Position numbers and translations under genes: made by a program. The notes under the pieces are model-generated. The model did no database searches and was not told the origin of the DNA. It saw only the letters and a program-made list of their open reading frames with translations. A stretch of DNA of 64,000 nucleotides from Pecten maximus. Taxonomy: Eukaryota. Positions within the stretch are counted from its first letter, which is position 1. The number at the start of each line of letters is the position of its first letter. The stretch is taken from assembly GCF_902652985.1 (NCBI RefSeq), contig NC_047023.1, positions 7,750,001 through 7,814,000 on the forward strand, in the 5' to 3' direction. Shown in pieces: positions 2,721-41,900 of this stretch.

Positions 2721-4206
2721 GTTACCATTTGGAAAGCACCCTTGCAGAGCATATCGCCAAACAAGAATATTCGAATTAGGTTCTTCCTGTATAAAGTGAC
2801 CTTTTGAGACAGCCCTGACTGAGGCATATCGACAGCCATATTGCCAGTATAGTACAGTAACCATTTGTGACGCCCTACTTTAATTTTATTACACAAAGAA
2901 CCTCTGACTTCCTCTTTATAAAGCACCTCGCATATATACGACGTCAATGCAAACCATATCATTTACAAAAAAATTCAAGACTACATAAAAAGCGTCAATT
3001 CTGTTCATAGGCATCAACATGTTTGTACATAGTAGCTTGAAACAATCTTACTTCAATCATACATAACACTAGATATCAATGTTTTCATAATCGTATGGTT
3101 AATTGACTTATACATACATTTGTGTATTCGATAAACTGGCTTTTTGTGATAAGGTACATGTATATAAGTAAGAGATCGACCTTACCTCTAATTGTACGGG
3201 GTGGTCTGCATGACAGCTGGACCCTGCAGCAGCAGCAGCAGCAGCAGCTTCATTGTACATGTTATCATGGCTGATAGCACGCCATTACACTGCACAACTA
3301 CACATAAAAATAGATTACGCAGAACTGGTTTTGTTCAATAACAGACAGCATATGTGCTCGCGTGTTCACTGTTCTGCATCGCCAGGTTAATTCAAAGGAG
3401 TATTTAATACGCATTTACGGCGGAGTTCACGTTTATATATATATATATATAATGCATTGTGTCTACACATACGGGACCAGTTCTGGCTTTTTTGTAGTAT
3501 CGTCAACTTCACTGTTTCTTCGAAAGAAATTTGACTTGATATTATTAACACCGTCAGATTTTAGGTTTTACTTTCAAATGCTGCCTGTGACGTTGCATGA
3601 TTTCAATACCACACTCTGTTGAGAAATCCTTTAAGTGAGTTGTGGAAATATATATTACATGTAAAACACCAATTTAGTACTGTTGTACGTAGCCACATTT
3701 CTACCAGGCAAGAATGTCCTAAAACTTTAATATCCAATATGTATTCGGACATGAATTTCTAGCGGATAGATCTTATTTTCTGAATTTGTCTACTTTCATT
3801 TTTTTTTTTTTTTTTTTTTTTGTTCAAACAATTTTATCGAATATCAGACTAACGCCTGTAATCTATTCAAACAAATAAAAATGATATCAGATATACATAT
3901 AAACTATGATGAAAATGAATATAGATATAATTATGTCTATAGTTCATATATAACCTTTTTTTATACCTATCCGCCAGCCATGGTTAACATCCATTCTAAT
4001 ATCTTATGTTTTTTGTTTTCATATTTTCTATGGCATGTTTAAAATTATTTATTCACTTGATTAAGTTTCGAATACTTCAGCATGATAATTAAACGGATTC
4101 CGAAAAGATTCATTACAAAATCTAACAACCGACTTGAAGGTGAGCATGCTAGTTTTAATGGTGTTCCCGTATGATTAAATAATCGTATGACAATCGCTGT
4201 TCAATC

Positions 4207-6672: not shown

Positions 6673-7559
6673 GCCCTCTTCAGTACATCACATTTTCTTA
6701 TTGAGATATATGTATATAAAAACATATAAATCTATACCAATGCACGTGTCCGTATTCTTCGTCAATGATCTGTCACGTGTCCACATGTTGGACACATGTA
6801 CATGTTTTATGCGTGTGATAGTGTAGCGACAATCTGTAACGTGTCCTGCAGAATATCTTACCATGATCTTAGCATTATATGACATCGCTCATCAAACAGT
6901 ATTTAAAGACATTAGATTCAAAAAGAGAGTAAAGAAAAGCTCATTAAAAAAACAACTATTCTTCCTTTTTATGACGCCATAATACCTGACATATACCTCT
7001 ACTCTATAACTTGGAATACCCCAAAATATTTCACAAATCAAAGTAAAGGGATTCCAGTCATCAACTACATGTTAGCGTTTCAAATGGACAATTTGTCTAC
7101 CAATATTTGTTTTTTACATGGGTCATGGGTACATTTATTATGTAACAATGTCGGAATATACATTAGCTAAGATACAAGATACTTGTTTAAATAGATTATC
7201 ACAGGGCATTACAGGCCAGTGAGCCGGTGGTTGGGAAAGCCCCACCCAAGCAAGCTCTCTGACTCTAGTACATGTAAAATTATTCAGGTAAAACAGATAG
7301 TTATCACTTATAATATAACAATGACATAAAGGTAAGTATAGATTAATAATTAGCAACATTACAATTTATTGCAAAGGATAAAAATATAAAAGCGAGATAT
7401 GGGGATTTAATATTGTCATAATTATTTGCAGATATTGCATGGACAGACAGACCATCCCAGGAATGGACCAGCCAGTTTTCAACTCTTCAAATGTCATTTA
7501 GGAGACGATTTGGAATAAGTCTGACAAGTCAATTATTTCAAAATAAAAATAAAATTGCA

Positions 7560-10560: not shown

Positions 10561-11446
10561 GCCCTCTTCAGTACATCACATTTTCTTATTGAGATATATG
10601 TATATAAAAACATATAAATCTATACCAATGCACGTGTCCGTATTCTTCGTCAATGATCTGTCACGTGTCCACATGTTGGACACATGTACATGTTTTATGC
10701 GTGTGATAGTGTAGCGACAATCTGTAACGTGTCCTGCAGAATATCTTACCATGATCTTAGCATTATATGACATCGCTCATCAAACAGTATTTAAAGACAT
10801 TAGATTCAAAAAGAGAGTAAAGAAAAGCTCATTAAAAAACAACTATTCTTCCTTTTTATGACGCCATAATACCTGACATATACCTCTACTCTATAACTTG
10901 GAATACCCCAAAATATTTCACAAATCAAAGTAAAGGGATTCCAGTCATCAACTACATGTTAGCGTTTCAAATGGACAATTTGTCTACCAATATTTGTTTT
11001 TTACATGGGTCATGGGTACATTTATTATGTAACAATGTCGGAATATACATTAGCTAAGATACAAGATACTTGTTTAAATAGATTATCACAGGGCATTACA
11101 GGCCAGTGAGCCGGTGGTTGGGAAAGCCCCACCCAAGCAAGCTCTCTGACTCTAGTACATGTAAAATTATTCAGGTAAAACAGATAGTTATCACTTATAA
11201 TATAACAATGACATAAAGGTAAGTATAGATTAATAATTAGCAACATTACAATTTATTGCAAAGGATAAAAATATAAAAGCGAGATATGGGGATTTAATAT
11301 TGTCATAATTATTTGCAGATATTGCATGGACAGACAGACCATCCCAGGAATGGACCAGCCAGTTTTCAACTCTTCAAATGTCATTTAGGAGACGATTTGG
11401 AATAAGTCTGACAAGTCAATTATTTCAAAATAAAAATAAAATTGCA

Positions 11447-12591: not shown

Positions 12592-13960
12592 TCATTATTG
12601 GTTCCTCGTGCTCTTCTTGTTTGTTTCTCGTGCTAATTGTTGGATCCTCGTGCTGATATTATTGGTTCCTCGTGCTGTTATTGTTAGTTTCTCGTGCTGT
12701 TATTGTTAGTTTCTCGTGCTAATTGTTGGATCCTCGTGCTGTTATTGTTGGGTCCTCGGACTGTTATTGTTGGGTCCTCGGACTGTTATTGTTGGGTCCT
12801 CGGACTGTTATTGTTGATTCCTCGTGCTGTTATTGTTAGTTACTCGTGCTGTTATTGTTGGGTCCTCGGACTGTTATTGTTGATTCCTCGTGCTGTTATT
12901 GTTTGGTCCTCGGACTGTTATTGTTGATTCCTCGTGCTGTTATTGTTGGTTCCTCGTGCTGGTATTGTTGGGTCCTCGGACTGTTATTGTTGATTCCTCG
13001 TGCTGTTATTGTTGGTTCCTCGTGCTGGTATTGTTGGGTCCTCGGACTGTTATTGTTAGTTACTCGTGCTGTTATTGTTGGGTCCTCGGACTGTTGTTGT
13101 TAGTTCCTCGTGCTGTTATTGTTGGTTCCTCGAACTGTTATTGTTAGTTCCTCGTGCTGGTATTGTTGGTTCCTCGGACTGTTATTGTTAGTTCCTCGTG
13201 CTGTTATTGTTAGTTACTCGTGCTGTTATTGTTGGTTCCACATGCTGTTATTTTGATTCCTCGTGCTGTTATTGTTGGGTCCTCGGACTGTTATTGTTGG
13301 GTCCTCGGACTGTTATTGTTAGTTACTCGTGCTGTTATTGTTAGTTCCTCGTGCTGTTATTGTTGGGTCCTCGTGCTGTTATTGTTGGGTCCTCGGACTG
13401 TTATTGTTGGTTCCTCGTGCTGTTATTGTTGGGTCCTCGTGCTGTTATTGTTAGTTCCTCGTGCTGTTATTGTTAGTTACTCGTGCTGTTATTGTTGGTT
13501 ACTCGTGCTGTTATTGTTAGTTCCTCGTGCTGTTATTGTTGGGTCCTCGTGCTGTTATTGTTGGGTCCTCGTGCTGTTATTGTTGGTTACTCGTGCTGTT
13601 ATTGTTAGTTCCTCGTGCTGTTATTGTTGGGTCCTCGTGCTGTTATTGTTGGGTCCTCGTGCTGTTATTGTTGGTTCCTCGTGCTGTTATTGTTAGTTAC
13701 TCGTGCTGTTATTGTTAGTTACTCGTGCTGTTATGTTTGGTTCCACATGCTGTTATTGTTGGTTCCTCGTGCTGGTATTGTTGGTTCCTCGTGCTGTTAT
13801 TGTTGGTTCCTCGTGCTGTTATTGTTGGTTCCTCGTGCTGTTATTGTTAGTTCCTCGTGCTGTTATTGTTGGGTCCTCGTGCTGTTATTGTTGGTTCCTC
13901 GTGCTGTTATTGTTAGTTCCTCGTGCTGTTATTGTTGGGTCCTCGGACTGTTATTGTCGA
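12592..13960. repeat. 22-bp minisatellite, long array (about 60 units)
   Basis: Tandem CTCGTGCTGTTATTGTT(G/A)G(T/G)T(C/A) units; source of the spurious LLLL/CCYC ORFs. Confidence 0.95.
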
Positions 13961-14166
13961 TTACACGGGCTGTACTTGTTTGTTCCTCTTATATATCTTT
14001 ACATGTGCTCCTCGTTTAACAATAGGGATGATTTATTTTTGACGATTCACATTTGATGCCGATGTCTTTACAAAATACCCCTTATCTGACGTCCATGGAA
14101 ATGTCTTTGTGCTTCGACAGGACTAATGTATACTTTGATAAAACATCATGTAACTGTCCTCCGTGT

Positions 14167-17100
14167 CTATGATCCTGTGTTCTGTGTATTACCATTATCG
14201 AGAATGTTCGTCACAACGTTGTTCGCCTGCAATAAATGTTTTCTTGCATTAAAGTATTACCAGTCATATATCAAAATATTTCTATTAGATAAAATGATTC
14301 ATATCATCACAGCTTATATTTGCAGCTTAAATCACCACAGCTTATATTACGATCACTATTGATCACTAGTTTTGATGTTACATTGAGAATATGGAACTTT
14401 GCTACATCCGGCATTCATTGCGATTTTAATCAATTACACAATTTGCCAATGATTTTGGCAGACCATTCAAAATGACGCTGTCCTGTTTTGACGTACAATG
14501 TATATACATTTTTATTGAAATCAACAGAAAAGATCGAACGGTTTCTAAAATATATCACATATATCTCACTCCAATCACAAAATATACCAATATTCTTTAC
14601 ATTGTCTAGTTGTATATTGTCACAACTACACGACACAAGACTCCAACACAACTACACGACACAGCAAGTGGAAGTCTACAGACTCCACCACGACTACACA
14701 ACACAAGACTCCAACACAACTACAAGACACAGCAAGTGGTAAGTCTACAGACTCCAACACAACTACACGCAACAAGACTCCAACACAACTACACGACAAA
14801 GCAAGTGGAAAGTCTTCGGACTCCAACACAACTACTCGAAACAACAAGTGGAAAGTCTACAGACTCCGACACAACTACTCGACACAAGACTCCAAAAAAA
14901 CTACACGACACAGCAAGTGGAAAGTCTATAGACTCCAACACAACTACCCGACACTAAAAGTGGAAAGTCTACAGACTCCAACACAACTACTCGACACTAA
15001 AAGTGGAAAGTCTACAGACTCCAAAAAAACTACTCCACACTAAAAGTGGAAGTCTACAGACTCCAACACAACTACACTACACAGCAAGTGGAAGTCTACG
15101 AACTCCAACACAACTACTCGACACAACAAGTGGAAGTCTACAGACTCCAACACAACTACTCGACACAACAAGTGGAAAGTCTACAGACTCCAACACAACT
15201 ACTCGACACTAAAAGTGGAAGGTCTACAGACTCCAACACAACTACACGACACAGCAACTGAAAGTCTACAGACTCCAACACAACTACACGACACAACAAC
15301 TGAAAGTCTACGAACTCCAACACAACTATACAACACAGCAACTTAAAAGCCCAGTCTACGGACATCCACATAAGTATACTTCCAAGATTGCGGGACGGTA
15401 AACTGTACTCAAATTTACAATTATGGAATATTTCCCGTTAACAAAAATGGTTGCTGGATCTCTATTTCTATATGTCCAGATATATAAACCTTTCTTGTTT
15501 TAAGTAACTTCCTTCCTTATTTATCCACTCCATTTTCTCCCGACAATCTTACCCATACGTAGAAGGTTCCAGCGGCTGGACTACATAGCCGAACAGTATC
15601 TTCGTCATGCTTTTGGATCATGGCCTGAACCGTTGACGCGGTACTTTGCGTCACATGCTGCGCTTGCTTTTCAGGGAATTCCTTGACACGACGAATTACG
15701 GATTTGCGTCCAAGGTTCCTTAGTAGAGCCTGTATGTCCTGCCAGTCCTGCGAACGTTGAATGAACGAAACATACAAATATAGGCAGGTAAGCAAAAGTG
15801 TTTAAAGTGTGAAAACGATGACAAAAGAAAATTACACGGAGGTCTTTGTCCCTACTGACAACTTCCTCCATGACTATAAAATACCCGAACATGTTTCATA
15901 TATACTTTTAACAGCGTCCAACAAGATCATTCGTGAACAGAATGATAATACCATGGTGAGAAAAGCATAAGACAGATTAACTCAAAATTGTTGACGTGAT
16001 AAAAAAACAATAAATAGAAAATATATATCGTTTACTCTTATGCAAATGTGTGTGTAAAATGTCTTTTAGTTTTCCGATGGCCGCATTTAAAGTATACATA
16101 GACAATCTATATATCGACTTTCCTGACATATTTTAAATTTACATGATCATCGGAGGTCAAGGTTTTCCCACATATTGTATTGTTTCATTTTGTTTAAATT
16201 GTTGTTACCTGTAGGTGATCCTTTGGTTCACCAAGAAGTGTGAATGTGGCTACCATCACGTCCATTATGGGAGGCTGAGGTATGTGGTAGCTGTGGAGTT
16301 CGGACACAGTCGGCTGCTTCATGGCCAGTATGTCATGTGCGAAGCGGTTCAGTTTGATCAGCTCGTTCCTAACCTGATCTGCCTGGTCAATCTTTGGTGC
16401 TAGCTCGGTTTTAAAATCCGAGTTCTCTGCATTCTCGATAGCAGTGTCTAAAACTTCAAGATGACGTCTGTTGATGGCATCGTTCAGACCTGTCAAACAA
16501 CCACAGAAAAGGAAACATTAAAGAATATCATAATAGCAAGGGGTTAATGTTATTAGCAATTATAGCAAATCCACAAACACAGACACAACTAAGTATATGG
16601 TTTAACTATATAATGGTTTATCAGCTATATAAAATCAATGCGTACCTTTCTGCAAGCTTAGAAAGTTTTTTCTTGTGAGAGCGACATGCAGGTCACCCTT
16701 ATCAGCTAGATTCATTTTCTCGAACTTAGCAATTGACATTGTTAACTTTTCCAAATCCTTTCCAGTGGCTGTTGTTTTCAGATCATCTCTTGTCTTCCTT
16801 TCCGTCACATTCTGTAAACGATAACAAAACCTAATACATACCGTGTATGATACACCTGTACTATCAACATTAACATTGGGTATATCCAGGTCGTGGTAAT
16901 GTGTAAGAACGCCTGCTACGAGTATGTTAATGACACAGCATCGTGGTAGTCATGATCATTACCAAGACATCACATGTACATGTGTGGTATGGTAGTTCAT
17001 CTCTTTACTTGTACAGTCAGGAATACAGGGATTATAGAATTATAGAATAGAATTACGTCATAACCCTTTTAGAACACTAGTTACTGTAAACGTGGTAATT

Positions 17101-20100
17101 TTCGCGGGACGGGCGGGGGTGGTGTTAATTTCGTGATTTCAATGTGTAAATTATACGCTTGGAGGTAATTTTCGCGATCGAATATAGTTTTGAACAGAAA
17201 TCAGTAAGAGTTGCTTCCCATCGATAAGCTAAAATGACCAAGTGTTTGTGACCCGGGAGCTTAGCTATTACCTGTGTATCTGACAAAATGTGAATGCATA
17301 TCATGGGTTTTGTTATTTTTGCGTATGTCGATATGATATGTATATATCAGTCTATTGTCAATACAATTTAGTTTAGCGTACAGTCCTGTATACAACTTTT
17401 ACGTACGTGATTTCAGACGATATCCACATTTTGAATTATATTTTTATAATAATGCTTATCAATATAAACTGACGAATCTAAAGTATTCAGTTGTTTGTAT
17501 CATAATTTGACTTCTGCGGACTTTGTAAATGCTGCCGATATAAACATTAATATAGCCTTTTTACTGTTCATTTAACGTTTTAGAATTAATTTCACGAGCA
17601 GCGCAAATGCACATGCTACAGTTGTAATATATTTAAGTGTCACCAACTGTAACGAAATGTTTGAAAGTATAGATAAACATATATGTCACATACTGTTTTT
17701 ATTTCGAGATTACTAATTGATATCAAAATAATACGCGTGGGGAAATTAACGCAACCAAAATGATTTAACATTTCCCCCTCGCGTAAATTTCCACGTTTGT
17801 AGTAGCTGAGACATGAAGTAAAATATATAATATATATATATATCCTAATGATACCCATATCAACACAGTAAATTTATCTAGGTACAAATGTGTATCCTAC
17901 CTCACGTCTGTTCCTCTTTTTCTTTTGTTCTGGTGTAGGATCGGTCGATATCAAATAATTACACGCGTTACGTTCTGTGTTTGTGTTCTTGTCCTTGGCA
18001 TGAATCTGTAGAGCATACTCTCCTTCGTCAGGAACGCACACTGCCACATTCAATTTTTTGGTCTTTTTGTTAAATTTTTGAGATACATATGACTCGAGTT
18101 CCTCAGTTGAGGTTTCGTTGTGTACAAGAACTGTCCTTACTGAAACAGTTTTCGAACATGTGAAACTGAAGTTAACTTCCTTTCTGGCTGAAGCCATGAC
18201 GATGCCTGTCTTTTGCGATGGTGATGTTAGTCCTGCATTCACCATTTCGTTACTAGGACCCCAACCAATATGACCGACATTCAAGGGAAGAGCTTTCGTG
18301 CCGCCCTCCGTCACTTCATTGCAGAACAGTTTGAAAGCACAAATCCATACACTATATCCTGAATGCTTCTGGGAATGAATTTCCAGCTTATACACGCCAG
18401 TCACAGGACATCTAACGATGAACTTCCATTGTTCAAAATTCCTCTCATTGACCACATACCTATCGAGTTGCATTTCTGATGGCAAGACCGACATGGATTC
18501 TTCATCGTTAAAGAATAATTCGTACGTTAAAAATCCATCCCATTTCTCATCTAATGCCTTGAATCCAATCGCCACTTCGCCGTTTTTAGAATGTAAACGC
18601 GAGTTGTACCCTGACGTAATCTCTACGTCACGTGAGAAGTAGCTCGTGCGTAGTAAAGGAATACTACAGAATTTCTCAAGTGTAAACGGCTTGTCGATGA
18701 ATTGCCATTCTTGATCCAAAGCCATAGCTATATGAACAAAATCTTCAGGGTCGGGCAGGAAGTAGTATTCATTAAGTTGAACAATATCCACACCTGTCGA
18801 TTTCTTTTCTTTCTCCCGAGCTGCATTTCCTGAAACAACACAATTGTCTTAATGTCAATATCAGTGTATTAATTGTAATGTAGTTACTACTAAATTTCGT
18901 ATTGTAGAATTGAAGATCAGCCTTCTATCTTTAAGAAAACCAGAAATAGAAATATAACACAAGGGCCCAATGGGCCCAAATCGCTCACTTGCAATGCAGT
19001 GATCTTTTCATATATGGATCCTGCAGTTATTTGAAAGCATGTACAGGACCAATGTAATGTCTCTCTGCACTTTGGCTTTTCACTAAAAGTCATTTAAAGA
19101 TTTAAGCATACTTGATCGACGTGACCTTGAATGTGAGTCAAGGTCATTCATTTGAACAAACTTGGTAGCCCTTTACCGCAGCATGCTACAGACCCAATAT
19201 CAACTCCCTGGGACTCTTGGTTATTGAGAAGAAGTCGTTTAAAGATTTTAGCCTTTTGACCCCTGTGACCTTGAATGAAAGTCAAGGTAATTCATTTGCA
19301 CAAACTTGGTAGCCCTTCACCCCAGCATGCTACAGGCCAAATATTAGGTCTCTGGGACTGTTGGTTATCGAGAAGAAGTCGTTTAAAGATTTTAGCCTTT
19401 TTGGCCCCTGTGACCTTGAATGAAGGTCAAGGCCATTCATTTGAACAAACTAGGTAGCCCTTTACCCCAGCATGCTACAGACCCAATATCAACTCCCTGG
19501 GACTCTTGGGTATTGAGAAGAAGTCGTTTAAAGATTTTAGCCTTTTTGACCCCCGTGACCTTGAATGAAGGTCAAGGTCATTCATTTGAACAAACTTGGT
19601 AGCCCTTTACCCCAGCATGCTACAGACCCAATATCAACTCCCTGGGACTCTTGTTATTGAGAAGAAGTCGTTTAAAGATTTTAGCCTTTTTGACTCCTGT
19701 GACCTTGAATGAAAGTCAAGGTCATTCATTTGAACAAACTTGGTAGCTCTTTACCCCAGCATGCTACAGGCCAAATATTAGGTCTCTGGGACTCTTGGTT
19801 ATTGAGAAGAAGTCGTTTAAAGATTTTAGCCTTTTTGACTCCTGTGACCTTGAATGAAGGTCAAGGTCATTCATTTGAACAAACTTGGTAGCCCTTTACC
19901 CCAGCATGCTACAGCCCCAATATCAACTCCCTGGGACTCTTGGTTATTGAGAAGAAGTCGTTTAAATATTTTAGCCTTTTTGACTCCTGTGACCTTGAAT
20001 GAAAGTCAAGGTCATTCATTTGAACAAACTTGGTAGCCCTTTACCCCAGCATGCTACAGCCCCAATATCAACTCCCTGGGACTCTTGGTTATTGAGAAGA

Positions 20101-23100
20101 AGTCGTTTAAAGATTTTAGCCTTTTTGACCCCTGTGACCTTGAATGAAAGTCAAGGTCATTCATTTGAACAAACTAGGTAGCCCTTCACCCCAGCATGCT
20201 ACAGACCCAATATCAACTCCCTGGGACTCTTGGTTATTGAGAAGAAGTCGTTTAAAGATTTTAGCCTTTTTGACCCCCTGTGACCTTGAATGAAGGTCAA
20301 GGTCATTCATTTGAACAAACTTGGTAGCCCTTTACCCCAGCATGCTACAGACCCAATATCAACTCCCTGGGACTCTTGGTTATTGAGAAGAAGTCGTTTA
20401 AAGATTTTAGCCTTTTTGACTCCTGTGACCTTGAATGAAGGTCAAGGTCATTCATTTGAACAAACTTGGTAGCTCTTTACTCCAGCATGCTACAGGCCAA
20501 ATATTAGGTCTCTGGGACTCTTGGTTATTGAGAAGAAGTCGTTTAAAGATTTTAGCCTTTTTGACTCCTGTGACCTTGAATGAAGGTCAAGGTCATTCAT
20601 TTGAACAAACTTGGTAGCCCTTTACCCCAGCATGCTACAGACCCAATATCAACTCCCTGGGACTCTTGGTTATTGAGAAGAAGTCGTTTAAAGATTTTAG
20701 CCTTTTTGACTCCTGTGACCTTGAATGAAAGTCAAGGTCATTCATTTGAACAAACTTGGTAGCCCTTTACCCCAGCATGCTACAGACCCAATATCAACTC
20801 CCTGGGACTCTTGGTTATTGAGAAGAAGTCGTTTAAAGATTTTAGCCTTTTTGACTCCTGTGACCTTGAATGAAAGTCAAGGTCATTCATTTGAACAAAC
20901 TAGGTAGCCCTTCACCCCAGCATGCTACAGACCCAATATCAACTCCCTGGGACTCTTGGTTATTGAGAAGAAGTTGTTTAAAGATTTTAGCCTTTTTGAC
21001 CCCTGTGACCTTGAATGAAGGTCAACATTATTCATTTGAACAAACTTGGTAGCCCTTCACCCCAGCATGCTACAGGCCCAATATTAGGTCTCTGGGCCTT
21101 TTGGTTATTGAGAAGAAGTTGCTTGAATGGAAAGTTGACGCCGGACGGACGACCGGACGACGGACGCCGCGCCACGGCATAAGCTCACTTGCCCTTCGGG
21201 CAGGTGAGCTAACAAGTCTGTATGCCTTCATATCGCTTGCAGCATTTAACGATCTACCAGATAGGTTTGTGGTTGTGTCACAGATCTGGTATGTCCCACA
21301 TAAATCGTGATCTTCATTCATTATCACATTTCCTGTTGTTAAAAGGGACGTGGCCTACGTGATAACTAGGGAGCCCTCCCGACGGATTATCCAGGCTTTC
21401 AAAAATAGAAATACTCCCTAATAGTTACACAGTATGGCTGTTTTTAAACACTGACTAATGCTAAGGGTGAATATCGATCTCGCTCATATTTGACATCTGA
21501 ACTTCATCAGAAGGTTAATAATCAACTATTTGTTGGTGGTTCAAGAGTTTGCTCAATACAGCATTGATCAAAATTTCTAAATACGATTTTGACTTTAGTT
21601 AGGATTGCAGATTTTTGGGCTGATTTTTATTACAACTTCAGTAAAATAAATCGAGAAATATAACTTACAACATAGAGGTTCGAGAGATGCAAGTTGTTGA
21701 CGAGCATGGTATTTATTTCAACCAAGTGTAAAAGTCAAACTTTAACTAAACTTGGTGCATACATCTTAAAACATTCTTTATTTATAAATAATCGTCCAGA
21801 ATGTATAGTTCAGTGATTCTTGAAATGAGTGGTACTGGGAAACTGGACTTTAAAATTTTACGTTTAGTTCAATTTCTCAAATAAGTATCAGTATTATATA
21901 TAAGTCCGACCAAACCTAAAATATACACTAGATGTATTTTGTACGGACATCTCAGCTGAACCTGAACAAAGTATGCATGAATTTAAATGTCAATTTGCTA
22001 TTTGTCAATACAGCAATATTCACATAAGTCTTTAACGTAAATATCGCTATACATAAATCAATTAATCAACTTGTGTCTGTTTGGGTTCATGTTGAGCCCT
22101 ATTTCAACAGTATAGCTCCTTCCTACGTAAGTTTCCATTGACATTTACACGTTAAAAGGCAGTATTTAGCTTAATTTATCCATAGGAAACACTATACAAG
22201 AATTATTGAATATTTTACATTTTTATTCCTTTGTGTTTATTAAGGAATATTTACCATTGTATGGCACTGCCACTATATAACCCTACCAATTCAGTTGCGA
22301 GTTCACCAGCTTATGAACTGCCAACTAAAAAAATCGCACGACAAATTAAAAATCGCAGATGGTAAATATAAGCATTGAACGGCTTTCAGTTGGCATTCAT
22401 AGTCAATATGAATGCCAACTGAAAGCCGTTTAATGCTTAAATATGCCCCGTGTTATAATTATGTCACTGTCCATTTATTTCATGGGAGTTATGTTCCTTG
22501 ACATTAGATAAAGGGGCCCCCTGATTGGTCAATTGTCCTAAGGGAGGGTGGCCTTATTCATTCAATACAGTTGTGTAAATTAAATATAGTTTCCTAGTAA
22601 TATATTTGCAAGGTAAAAAGTTTACCATATCTTAGTAAACAACACATTATTATATATTACACCCTAATCAAAGGTTATTCTGTTGAAGTTTTGTTTCTAT
22701 CAAATGCAAAGTTCACAGATAAAAAATGGTATATACCTTTTGTTTCGACGAGTGTAAATTTGCCGGTACTATGTCCAGCAATGGCGGAGAATGCCCACAT
22801 TGGAAAGACAATCCTCCACTCCCCGTCCACGAATACTCCATTCCACCTGTTTTCTAATGCTTCAACTCTTGTCTCAACATCGCCTACCTCGTACCCCGCG
22901 CTCTTTGCCACACCCCTAATTATCACACAGGGGATGTTTCCTTCCCTAGAAATTTAAATCTGACATAGATTATTCAATAATACCTAAGAGATATATTGCA
23001 GAAATATGTCAAAACGGATTAATTTTAATAATGAAATATAAAATTCCAAGATATTTCTATACCGGAAATGAATTTCTCAAATACCTGCATAATCTAGCGA

Positions 23101-23876
23101 ACAGGTAGGCAAAAGACATGTTGCTTTCCTGTACTTGTCGTAGAATTGAATTCGGACAATCGGTTGGTCCTCCCTGGCTTTTTGTTTTATTTTTGTGTCC
23201 AATCCAGCAGAATACAGCCCTGACCTTCTCAAGGTCAGTCTTTAATCCACTGAGGAGATACTCGTAGAACTCCTTAAAACTCTCGCCGGCAGAGTCAGGT
23301 GCCTTAATCATTTAGAAAGGTAAAGCTTTAATTTACGTTTAACACACTTGATATATATATAACTGTCAATAAATTTAATAAGGAATGTTTATTTCAATGA
23401 GATCTGTCTTAAAAATTTGTTTGCGTATATTTTCATCTACATTTGCGGCATTTCTGTAACTCATATAAATAAATAAATAAAGTACATGTTTCTTACCTCA
23501 ACAAGAAAATAAACGGTCTGACAGGTCAACCTGTATTGTGTATTCATTGTCTTAATCTCCCGTACTCGATCTAATTGTTTTCTAGGTATATATATTAATT
23601 CATTGTATAATGTATGTATGTCTGTCTGTCTGGATGTCTGGATGTCTGTCTGGATGTCTGGATGTCTGTCTGGATGTCTGGATGTCTGTCTGTCTGTCTG
23701 GATGGATGTTAGATAATCGGGGAAAAGGAAGTAGCAAAATCCCATTTAATATATATACTTACTTGCATCGCTCTTTCCTCGATACTGGCATACTCGGACT
23801 TGTTAAAAATAGTAACTTTTTTTGTTCGAGGTGGTTTTGGTAGGGGATACCCATCAGGAATAAAGGGGAAATCAGC
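14167..23876 (-). CDS. Gene A: KY/Hillarin/LTD-1-like transglutaminase-fold protein (catalytically dead) with a C-terminal dynein-MTBD-like domain; first coding exon not found
   Basis: GT-AG exons join in frame: 23876-23763 (ADFPFIPDGYPLPKPP), 23302-23085 (TDLEKVRAVFCWI...SFAYLFARLC), 22945-22737 (IPCVIIRGVAKSAGYEVG...WNGVFVDGEWRIV), 18829-17901 (NEYYFLPDP...GVYKLEI...GEYALQIHA...NYLI), 16811-16646, 16489-16209, 15747-15553, 14226-14167 (ANNVVTNILDNGNTQNTGS*). Confidence 0.85.
14620..15345. repeat. ~42-43-bp minisatellite (AGACTCCAACACAACTACACGACACAGCAAGTGGAAAGTCTAC) in the last intron of gene A
   Basis: Direct tandem units with internal ~23-bp sub-repeats. Confidence 0.9.
17084..17802. mobile_element. 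MITE / non-autonomous DNA transposon with TA target-site duplication
   Basis: TA|CTGTAAACGTGGTAATTTTCGCG ... CGCGTAAATTTCCACGTTTGTAG|TA; imperfect ~23-bp TIRs plus internal TTTCGCG sub-repeats. Confidence 0.75.
18956..21212 (-). mobile_element. Non-autonomous Helentron-associated element (HINE / pearl-like) with ~14 tandem 145-bp core repeats
   Basis: - strand 5' end TTAGCTCACCTGCCCGAAGGGCAAGTGAGCT (inverted repeat), then a CGTC microsatellite, a 145-bp array (~19092-21120; ORF spacing 145), and a 3' end CAAGTGAGCG...GGGCCCATTGGGCCC-TTGTGTT palindrome. Confidence 0.85.
22369..22439. repeat. Near-perfect intronic hairpin (~32-bp arms, 5-nt loop)
   Basis: AAGCATTGAACGGCTTTCAGTTGGCATTCATA-GTCAA-TATGAATGCCAACTGAAAGCCGTTTAATGCTT. 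Confidence 0.85.
23610..23708. repeat. Compound TCTG/GATG microsatellite
   Basis: (TGTC)n and GGATGTCT units. Confidence 0.85.
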
Positions 23877-38919: not shown

Positions 38920-41900
38920 CTATACACAAATCACACTAAGGCATGTGGACACCGAATCGGTCCTCACAGTCATGGGTATTTCCTCCATTTTCTGATTTTT
39001 GTCAAGTTGTGTGTCACGTGGTGTGTCACGTGGTATATCACGTGGTGTATCATATGGTGTATCATATGGCGTACCACGCTGTCTGTCATTTAGCGCGCCA
39101 TGTGGTGTTCCACTTTGGATGCCAGGTGATATGTGAGGACTTCCAACTGGAGTAGATGAATTATCTGTCAATGTTGTTGATTCTACGGATATGATATCCC
39201 GGGCTATCCCACTAGCCTACAAATACCGAAAATAAAGCCGAGCTGATAAACTGTTACACCATATCGTTATCAAAAGTCCTCAAGTTACGACAGACTAGAT
39301 CAATACTAATGCATTTGCTCCAAAACCATGAAAGTATACCGTTGCATTGACACAAATTCAGCAGATTTTCTTGTTGGATTTTTTTTTTTTTTTTTTTTTT
39401 TTCATTCTTCTCTTGCAAATTGTGTTATTTGATTGATTCGGCTTATTGAGATATTAAGAAATATTGTTTGTTCATATATTGAAATTTTAATAAACAACAA
39501 ATAGCCAGTAGCATCAACTCTGATAACCCTTACCCAAAGATAGAAAGTACCGGCTCCAGCACTGGCTCCCACTGCTGTATCTCTGTCATACTTTTGGAGA
39601 ATCCTGAGTACTTTCTTGGCCAGTGGGATCTTTACTTTTGTAACATCAAACAGTCGAACTCTAACACTCAGGCTGTCACGACCTGTCTTCCTCATTATCG
39701 TCTGAATCTCTTCCCACTCCTAGATATAGAAATAAAACGTTTGATTTCTATCTATCAATATATACAAACGTAAGATAAAGAGTACATTATGAAATATAAT
39801 TATCATATTGATGCTAGAGGAGCATGAAAGGCTTGACTTAAAGTAAACAAATTCTTTTACAATGCAAAGATATGTTCATGTAACACATTTGCGATCTAAC
39901 GTTTTATCAGCCTGTACATACGCTATAATCAAAAAATGATACAATGGAAAATGATTTATAACCAAGAGAGTTATTTATATTTTAATGTATTTCAACAATT
40001 TATTTTTTTTAAATGATTGCAAATCCTTTATTCCAATCTATCTAAGAAAATTACTACAAATTAAAATATCATGAAAACAAAAATCTGTTTTTATATCCTG
40101 TCTTCCGATTGTTGGGGATACTGACTTCTAATGTAGATTCCTCGTCGCCCAACAATAGGATAGGTGGCACGCATTATGTCTACCATGACAGGTACTGGGT
40201 CTTTATACCGATGTAATTCTGATATCGTTCGGGAACTTAATGCCAGCACATCGTGTGAATGTTTCTTCAGAGTTCTCAGGTTCTTTACCATCTTAGTCGA
40301 CTGACGAAATAAAGGTTTCATCTCGTCAGACTTTGGTAGGGTTTTGGAGTTTTCCAAAGCTTTTTCTAATATAGGTAAGCTTCGTCGGCTGAGGCCTTCT
40401 TTAAAGTCTGAAAAAGATTGTACAAAAGATATTAATCAAGCAGCATAAAGAGCTACATCATACAGCTGTTTGGTCATTCTAGGACTCGTCAGTGATGTTA
40501 GGAATATCATACAGCTGTTATGTGCTTCAAGGACTCTTTAGTGATGTTAGTGACATCATACAACCGTTGGTCCTTCTAGGACTAGTCAGTGATGTTAGGG
40601 ATATCATACAGCTTTTGTGTGCTTCTAGGACTCGTCAGTGATGTTAGTGGGATCAGACGGCTGTTTGGTCCTTCTAGGACTTTTCAGTGATATTAGTGAC
40701 ATCACAAAGCCGTTTTGTCCTTCTAGAACACGTCAGTAATCAAAATAATCAGAATGTAATTAACGTATTTTCGTATACTGTTTAAATGTAACGGTTAGTT
40801 TCTAACAGTCATAGATATTAAAAGAAAAGAAAAAGTAACAATCGTATTGTTAATACGTACCTCTCATTAATTTCAGGTAACAATCCTATTGTTCATACCT
40901 ACCTCTCATTGTTTCCAGGTAACAATCCTATTGTTCATACCTACCTCTCATTGTTTTCAGGTAACAATCCTATTGTTCATACCTACCTCTCATTGTTTTC
41001 AGGTAACACACTTGTGTTTTAGCCTTGTCTACCTCTCCGTCGTCAGGCAGATTCAGCACGTTGAATTTGTCTATTGCTTCTTGAAGTTCATCGGGGTTAT
41101 CGCCCTTTATCAATGCAGCGAATAATCGTGTACGTGCGTTCTTCTCCTCAGCATTCTTAAACAGAAATGTTTTTATTTAAAATTAGTACGATATGAAAGT
41201 AAATACTCTGAATTATACATGTATAGACCGAAATATTAGTTAATGATTAGATATTTTATAGGATTTTTTCAAATAAAGCGATAATTTTTCATTAATTTTT
41301 TTTTCAGGAGCATTGATAAAACTATGTTAAGTGAAATGAATTTCATTTTATACTGTATGAGTCCTGTCGATGAAATGTAATCAATATCCTCAAGAAATTG
41401 TTTCTCATATCGTGTCATGGTAACATAATAATACAAATATAATACCTTATAATTACCGATAGTATCAATAATATGCTTTTACATCATTGATTATTATGTT
41501 AATGACTATTCTCACCAACAGAAAGACCCTGTGGCTGCTAGAGATGGGATAAACCGATTACACACGGGGTAGGGAGGGATAGCTGGCTCGCGCTATGACG
41601 CCACTAACAATAACGTAACATCATCATTTTATGTGGCATACCCACGGCGCAAATTGATAACGTAATCAATTTCAACGCACATTTCCATGGGACATTGATG
41701 ATGGTGTGATGAAGTACAGCATAATCAAACATTGGCTTGTACCTTTGACAGAGATATTTCAACCCTGTTGTAAGAATTTGGCTGGTTAGCGCTGGGCAAG
41801 CCTCGTGCTGGCCAGCCAAAGTCTTACACAAGTGTTGGGATATCCTGTCCATGAACGATTAAATTATTCTATAATGTACACAAGACAATGTATGACAATA

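Follow-up and report, generated by a model that had tools for sequence, protein, structure and literature searches.

A 64,000-nucleotide stretch of the scallop Pecten maximus genome (NC_047023.1, positions 7,750,001 to 7,814,000; hereafter the window) carries three KY/hillarin-like genes, A, B and C, arrayed in tandem on the minus strand, together with a duplicated 5′ part of C. The C-terminal ~150 residues of the gene A protein are homologous, by sequence profile and predicted fold, to the distal stalk and microtubule-binding domain (MTBD) of dynein. The protein is not a dynein. Gene A is a P. maximus member of the KY/hillarin/LTD-1 family with an extra C-terminal domain. The dynein MTBD has been treated as peculiar to dynein heavy chains, where its affinity is set remotely by the ATPase ring via the stalk. 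We find it reasonably likely that the MTBD homologue on the KY scaffold acts as a static microtubule anchor, in a family that possibly tethers membrane to microtubules.

The module is encoded by the last three exons of gene A, namely exon Y, exon Z and a short last coding exon (Table 1). A profile built from 14 paralogous copies of exon Y was searched against all PDB chain sequences. Its top 47 matches are all dynein heavy chains, the best being DNAH6 (E = 4e-7), and the DNAH6 alignment spans the end of stalk helix CC1 and MTBD helices H1-H2. The exon Z profile, run alone against the PDB, gave no significant match (E about 1). Its best dynein alignment is to residues 56-118 of 6kio_M, right after the part of that chain covered by exon Y (15-53). 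A full-length family profile of 30 relatives matches the same chain, an isolated yeast dynein MTBD, over residues 17-123 of 130 (E = 5.9e-11), and this was reproduced in a repeat run. Dynein heavy chains make up 32 of the 34 matches of the full-length profile at E ≤ 0.01. The two non-dynein matches, FAP246 and a bacterial transglutaminase-like protein, fall on the N-terminal part.

An initial annotation, made by a model from the DNA letters, had pointed to a likeness to the dynein MTBD and to a set of colinear landmarks. The likeness is borne out by the profiles (E = 4e-7 for exon Y, E = 6e-11 for the whole MTBD) and by fold comparisons at Z-scores of 13-17. The landmarks E-x-R/H-S, PP, LLG, W, F-D and S-x-A-G..W do align in order with dynein. 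Residues common to the family and dynein are mostly core positions: E in H1, PP, LLG, W and S.A..W.

The spliced product of gene A was examined through a public protein retrieved by search, not through exons joined from the window. This protein, XP_033751020.1 (‘hillarin-like [Pecten maximus]’, 687 aa; here P0004), is identical to the gene A exons and has the same final 19 residues. Its structure was predicted with AlphaFold2 using 30 relatives. The predicted local distance difference test score (pLDDT) averages 89.7 and lies at 86-94 over residues 460-680. C-terminal helices are placed at 540-564, 568-575, 582-594, 605-613, 620-630, 637-647 and 652-678, and the chain finishes with helix at 660-678 and a disordered tail at 681-687. 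The published dynein MTBD is defined as H1-H6 between CC1 and CC2, and it binds the tubulin intradimer interface (Lacey et al. 2019, PMC6629372). P0004 has this layout: a long helix, then six short ones, then a terminal helix.

The P0004 model was aligned, without a prefilter, to 48,161 representative chains. FAP246 came first (Z 17.1, residues 1-450) and dynein structures came next, among them 5ayh (Z 16.0), 3err_B (Z 15.7, residues 532-687), 8i3j (Z 14.1, 2.3 Å over 118 residues) and 6l4p_B (Z 13.0). Foldseek with the whole 687-aa model returned no dynein match, its list being swamped by immunoglobulin (Ig) domains. P0048, a 212-aa relative with nothing but the module, was modeled at pLDDT 94.8 and aligns to mouse dynein 3280-3406 at Z 17.4, with 1.7 Å over 123 residues. 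In Foldseek its 10 best rows are all dynein, as is almost every row listed; a radial-spoke chain stands at rank 13. In the P0048 comparison, clearly unrelated rows reach no more than Z 7.6. The AlphaFold and structure search suggested with the initial annotation thus came out in its favor. Two independent lines, sequence profile and fold, agree and therefore support homology to the dynein MTBD. In the module, a CC1-like helix is followed by a six-helix bundle (H1-H6) and a CC2 helix cut to ~19 residues. The suggestion that the upstream helical exons act as a stalk did not fare as well. Helices at 456-531 (~80 residues) fold as separate hairpins and match only non-specific helical repeats (Z 5-8), so that the stalk idea is right only for the short CC1/CC2 stub.

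Three chains outside dynein also match the module in the fold comparisons. They are 7jtk_C from radial spoke 1 (Z 12), 9ya2_L from the Toxoplasma intraconoidal microtubule (Z 10.3) and 9fqr_Xl from the bovine sperm doublet (Z 10), placing them at Z 9-12, and all come from solved microtubule assemblies. The paper behind the Toxoplasma conoid match is silent on MTBD likeness. If these chains are true MTBD folds, the MTBD is more widespread outside dynein than recognized.

Transcription across the locus was followed with RNA contigs of the same species, placed on positions 14000-18900 of the window. These come from three runs of one study and one run of a second study, which is classed as RNA only by guess. 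The phases of the last three exons (1, 0 and 0) fit one another and the upstream exon at 16811-16646, with AG acceptors and GT donors. RNA joints with GT-AG borders on the minus strand lie at 15746/16208, 16487/16644 and 16811/17901. A fourth, 14225/15552, is likewise GT-AG and is seen only in the three runs of the one study. All four joints are bridged by individual contigs (1.1-2.2 kb) that reach from the Ig-like exon into the 3′ untranslated region. Contig ends that reach past 18831 code ..STGKFTLVETK, the end of the transglutaminase-core exon at ~22739. The MTBD-like exons are spliced to the KY exons in RNA and expressed as one transcript. For gene A, the peptides that the initial annotation quoted from the last three exons are exact. 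It had also named a case that would undo the fusion, in which these exons are not spliced to the transglutaminase exons. This is ruled out because the RNA contigs run past 18831 into the core exon.

The predicted order of the gene A protein is a transglutaminase-like core, two KY-type Ig-like domains, ~80 residues of helical hairpins and the MTBD-type domain. The proposed fusion to a KY/hillarin scaffold agrees with Pfam as well as with the RNA contigs. As in KY/hillarin/LTD-1 proteins, the N-terminal two thirds of P0004 match Ig-like_KY (PF23265) in two stretches at E = 6e-34, and Transglut_core (PF01841) weakly, at 18.1 bits against a 23-bit cut-off. Among the 30 relatives, Ig-like_KY accompanies the C-terminal module in 27 and Transglut_core in 24 (at E ≤ 0.1 for PF01841). 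The comparison with this family covered Pfam models and FAP246. By fold, the transglutaminase-like core resembles FAP246 (at the Z-score given above) and Streptococcus pyogenes TglA (Z 11.6), and FAP246 is matched by the family profile at E = 4e-15.

Unlike active transglutaminases and papain-like enzymes, the scallop protein lacks the catalytic Cys and His of the Cys-His-Asp triad. In all 30 aligned relatives the position three before the F/Y-A motif is never Cys, and the position two before a conserved W-N-A-V is never His; both motif positions were placed by eye from the transglutaminase-core consensus. Because the two residues are absent family-wide, ‘pseudo-transglutaminase’, the term used in the initial annotation, is a fair label.

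FAP246 is the closest solved structure to residues 1-450 of the scallop scaffold. It is a Chlamydomonas subunit of the C1b projection of the ciliary central pair (PDB 7N6G/7SQC), and its loss leads to slower, disordered swimming. The scallop protein differs in having a dynein-type MTBD at its C-terminus; FAP246 has instead been described with leucine-rich repeat (LRR) and EF-hand domains (bioRxiv 10.1101/2021.06.16.448709). A microtubule setting fits by analogy, in that the nearest solved relative of the scaffold sits on ciliary central-pair microtubules.

The module shares with the dynein heavy-chain MTBD (mouse DYNC1H1 3260-3427, PDB 3ERR/5AYH/6RZB; yeast 6KIO) the six short helices between CC1 and CC2. 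The rest of the molecule differs. The 687-aa gene A protein is made up of transglutaminase-like, Ig-like and helical domains only and lacks the AAA+ ring, linker and tail of dynein, and the module sits at the C-terminus of this unrelated scaffold with a similarity, in P0004, below the Pfam threshold. The long antiparallel stalk of dynein, with ~100 residues per strand and a nucleotide-driven registry change, is likewise missing. CC2 stops ~19 ordered residues past H6 and pairs only with the last turns of the CC1-like helix. Because the chain ends there, only a stub of the stalk exists. The ‘flap’ insertion of axonemal dynein MTBDs is also lacking.

ATP would not be able to switch the domain, as the protein has neither an AAA+ ring nor a long stalk through which helix registry could shift. 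Lacking such a switch of affinity, the domain would most likely be a constitutive, static anchor that places the KY scaffold on microtubules. Exon shuffling was considered as the route of capture and is unsupported, since intron positions in dynein and the module do not coincide. In seven scallop dynein genes the shared intron follows H3 instead of preceding the DW motif, and an intron within two codons of that site is present in just one of the seven. There is thus no evidence on how the domain was captured.

The module belongs to a large family. Searches of the 918-Mb P. maximus assembly, in which the window is contig 9, 7.75-7.81 Mb, found at least 15 copies of exon Y and at least 13 of exon Z, six of them within ~76 kb around the window. 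The at least 15 paralogues share invariant core positions. Among 1.84 billion representatives, the exon Y profile matches 1058 proteins at E ≤ 1e-3. Named relatives come from many bivalves, gastropods, the brachiopod Lingula, three Branchiostoma species and the tunicate Styela, and orthologues in other scallops are 70-79% identical. The initial annotation had looked to lophotrochozoans for the same fusion. It is indeed found in molluscs and a brachiopod, but it is not confined there and occurs in amphioxus and a tunicate as well.

Some relatives carry the module without the KY scaffold. These proteins of 300-480 aa (P0013, Lottia XP_009044124.1; P0015; P0016, Elysia KAK3772631.1; P0018; P0051) combine an N-terminal MGCG.. 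acylation motif and a disordered stretch with helical hairpins, the MTBD-like module and, last, a basic tail. In P0013 and P0016 the hairpins and module are 40-44% identical to the gene A C-terminus. Stand-alone copies are also present in the P. maximus genome (L004/L019, contig 9, 37.32 Mb). Other non-dynein proteins, P0071/P0151 and P0044, bear four or five MTBD-like modules in tandem; in P0071 (937 aa) a CFAP97 domain precedes four PF12777-positive modules (E = 1.6e-25, 90 bits).

The N-termini of these proteins bear on location in the cell. Of the KY-fused relatives, 22 of 35 begin with the N-myristoylation consensus MG..[STAGCN], as do 7 of the 15 short ones, often as MGCGSS, a start whose sequence also suggests palmitoylation. 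Within the window, the start of gene B (45486) reads MGGSPSK and the gene C starts (57412, 61068) read MGSASSS; both fit the consensus. A tether is proposed because most relatives start with this motif: an acylated N-terminus would hold the membrane or cell cortex, and the family would link it to microtubules.

Several points weigh against the anchor reading and its extension to a tether. Homology in a predicted fold is no proof of microtubule binding. The Pfam MT family (PF12777), a check proposed with the initial annotation, matches neither the gene A exons nor P0004, and a genome-wide search with it returned dynein genes on other contigs only and nothing at the gene A locus. Among the relatives, the net charge of the module varies between -8 and +10. 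The gene A module has a charge of 0, and most of the short stand-alone forms are acidic. Just before H1, where dynein has a basic residue, many KY-fused members have K and the stand-alone ones D or E, as mapped by eye. A window search up to 31 kb yielded no credible first exon of gene A with an MG.. start, and the public gene A model is without an N-terminal MG exon, so the tether idea rests on the relatives. A low-GC stretch of the window (26-30%, ~26000-34700), with inflated homopolymer runs adjoining an N run at ~34.4 kb, resembles poorly polished assembly rather than biology, and it may conceal that exon.

Because module charge varies, the stand-alone forms are mostly acidic and D or E stands before their H1, a serious rival has to be considered. 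A descendant of the dynein MTBD could have kept the fold, lost microtubule binding and been re-used for another partner, such as a different filament, an LRR light-chain-like protein or itself at the end of the spacer. The predominance of core positions among the residues conserved with dynein suits this account, and a precedent exists within dynein, where the MTBD of the outer-arm gamma heavy chain binds light chain 1 (PDB 6l4p, matched at Z 13-14.5). We nevertheless regard re-use as rather unlikely. From molluscs to amphioxus, the six-helix bundle is retained in full along with the stalk stub, with high predicted confidence, the scaffold’s closest solved relative sits on ciliary microtubules, and no result points to another partner.

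The remaining explanations would remove the MTBD or the fusion altogether. Helical proteins often yield middling Z-scores, and this, together with the weak score of exon Z alone and the failure of PF12777 on P0004, could be taken to mean that short helical bundles are alike by chance or convergence. Such likeness is strongly disfavored and very improbable, given a profile match at E = 6e-11 over the whole domain, module matches that are exclusively dynein, and exons Y and Z aligning to adjoining parts of the same dynein MTBD. The fold scores, Z 14-17 at 1.7-2.3 Å, also stand well apart from the clearly unrelated rows. PF12777 does match 7 of the 30 relatives at E ≤ 0.1 (best E 1.6e-5), it is precomputed for the Saccostrea relative P0156, and the nearest ESM Atlas clusters are mollusc clusters that carry it. 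It is less credible still that the MTBD-like exons form a separate downstream gene and the fusion is a gene-prediction artefact. An out-of-frame exon Y in gene B and the N-terminally incomplete public model of gene A lend themselves to that idea, but single RNA contigs cross the four joints and continue into the transglutaminase-core exon, and the same architecture recurs in dozens of relatives from several phyla. A static microtubule anchor on a KY scaffold is the reading we prefer.

Table 1. Exons and modules of genes A, B and C in window coordinates
Feature	Position	Strand	Description
Gene A exon Y	16209..16489	minus	Phase 1, AG acceptor, GT donor; ends ...LLGEPKDHLQ; codes CC1-like helix and MTBD helices H1-H2
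Gene A exon Y landmarks	16209..16489	minus	..TVSELHSY..PQPP..DVMVATFTLLGE..
Gene A exon Z	15553..15747	minus	Phase 0; DWQD... to ...FYVW; codes MTBD helices H3-H6 (DW..IQALL .. F .. SPAAGTFYVW)
Gene A last coding exon	14167..14226	minus	Phase 0; ANNVVTNILDNGNTQNTGS + TAG; 19 residues extending H6 as a short CC2 stub
Gene A helical spacer exon, between Ig-like domains and MTBD module	16646..16811	minus	RNA joints; model helices 456-531
Gene A large exon, two KY-type Ig-like domains	17901..18831	minus	PF23265 E = 4e-35; residues 339-445 match filamin-type Ig; RNA contigs
Gene A transglutaminase-like core exons (23308-23084 and 22953 to ~22739, with intron between)	22739..23308	minus	tblastn of P0004; RNA contig ends
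Gene A further upstream coding exon, absent from the 687-aa public model	23766..23873	minus	65-67% identity to residues 32-67 of the 756-aa orthologues P0153 and P0154
Gene B MTBD-like module: exon Y 40407-40126, exon Z 39719-39534	39534..40407	minus	1-nt frame shift in exon Y near 40155-40160
Gene C MTBD-like module: exons 53775-53504, 51817-51632, 50352-50311	50311..53775	minus	88% identical to P0049

Genes B and C were also said to encode the domain in their last three exons. This holds for C, as it does for A. In gene B only the two large exons are present, exon Y is frame-shifted, and the last MTBD exon was looked for in the window and not found. The frame shift sits directly before the LLG motif, where the close relative P0059 reads ATYLLLGE, and it points to a pseudogene or else to an indel in the assembly. 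Gene C has its first six coding exons twice, in tandem (61068-57737 and 57412-54090, minus), as near-identical copies with a period of ~3.65 kb, and only one set of MTBD-like exons follows the doubled part. Either gene C is truly duplicated internally, or the doubling arose in assembly.

Repeats flank and interrupt the 3′ end of gene A. A 22-bp satellite of ~64 copies lies just 3′ of the gene (12594-13988), and a 42/43-bp minisatellite of ~10 or more copies lies within its last intron (14621-15341). More fragments of KY-like 5′ exons (9589-9461, 5701-5483 and 4392-4264, minus) lie towards the left edge of the window, as does a ~3.9-kb segmental duplication with identical open reading frames at 7138-7359 and 11025-11246. 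These fragments and the duplication probably belong to another paralogue that runs off the window.

Neither a KY-MTBD fusion nor any non-dynein MTBD turned up in full-text searches of the literature. Some relatives already bear PF12777 tags from automatic pipelines, which means that the domain call is not entirely new. The initial annotation’s view that the architecture is undescribed agrees with these searches and has to be softened for the pipeline tags. A fuller account can be offered tentatively, at somewhat short of an even chance. A non-motor family, so far undescribed, would have captured the dynein MTBD and locked it on a stalk stub as a constitutive anchor. With acylation its members would be membrane-to-microtubule tethers, the KY form would recruit a pseudo-transglutaminase scaffold, and the module would be the first natural stand-alone MTBD.

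A motor-less MTBD on a short stub would offer a natural ‘fixed-registry’ MTBD for the study of microtubule affinity and, if the anchor reading is true, a natural experiment on how stalk registry sets that affinity. The list of candidate microtubule-associated proteins gains a new class, present in several invertebrate phyla. By analogy, the link to FAP246 suggests that the association of KY scaffolds with microtubules may be old. For the poorly understood KY/hillarin scaffold family, the module provides a candidate cytoskeletal attachment that is concrete and testable.

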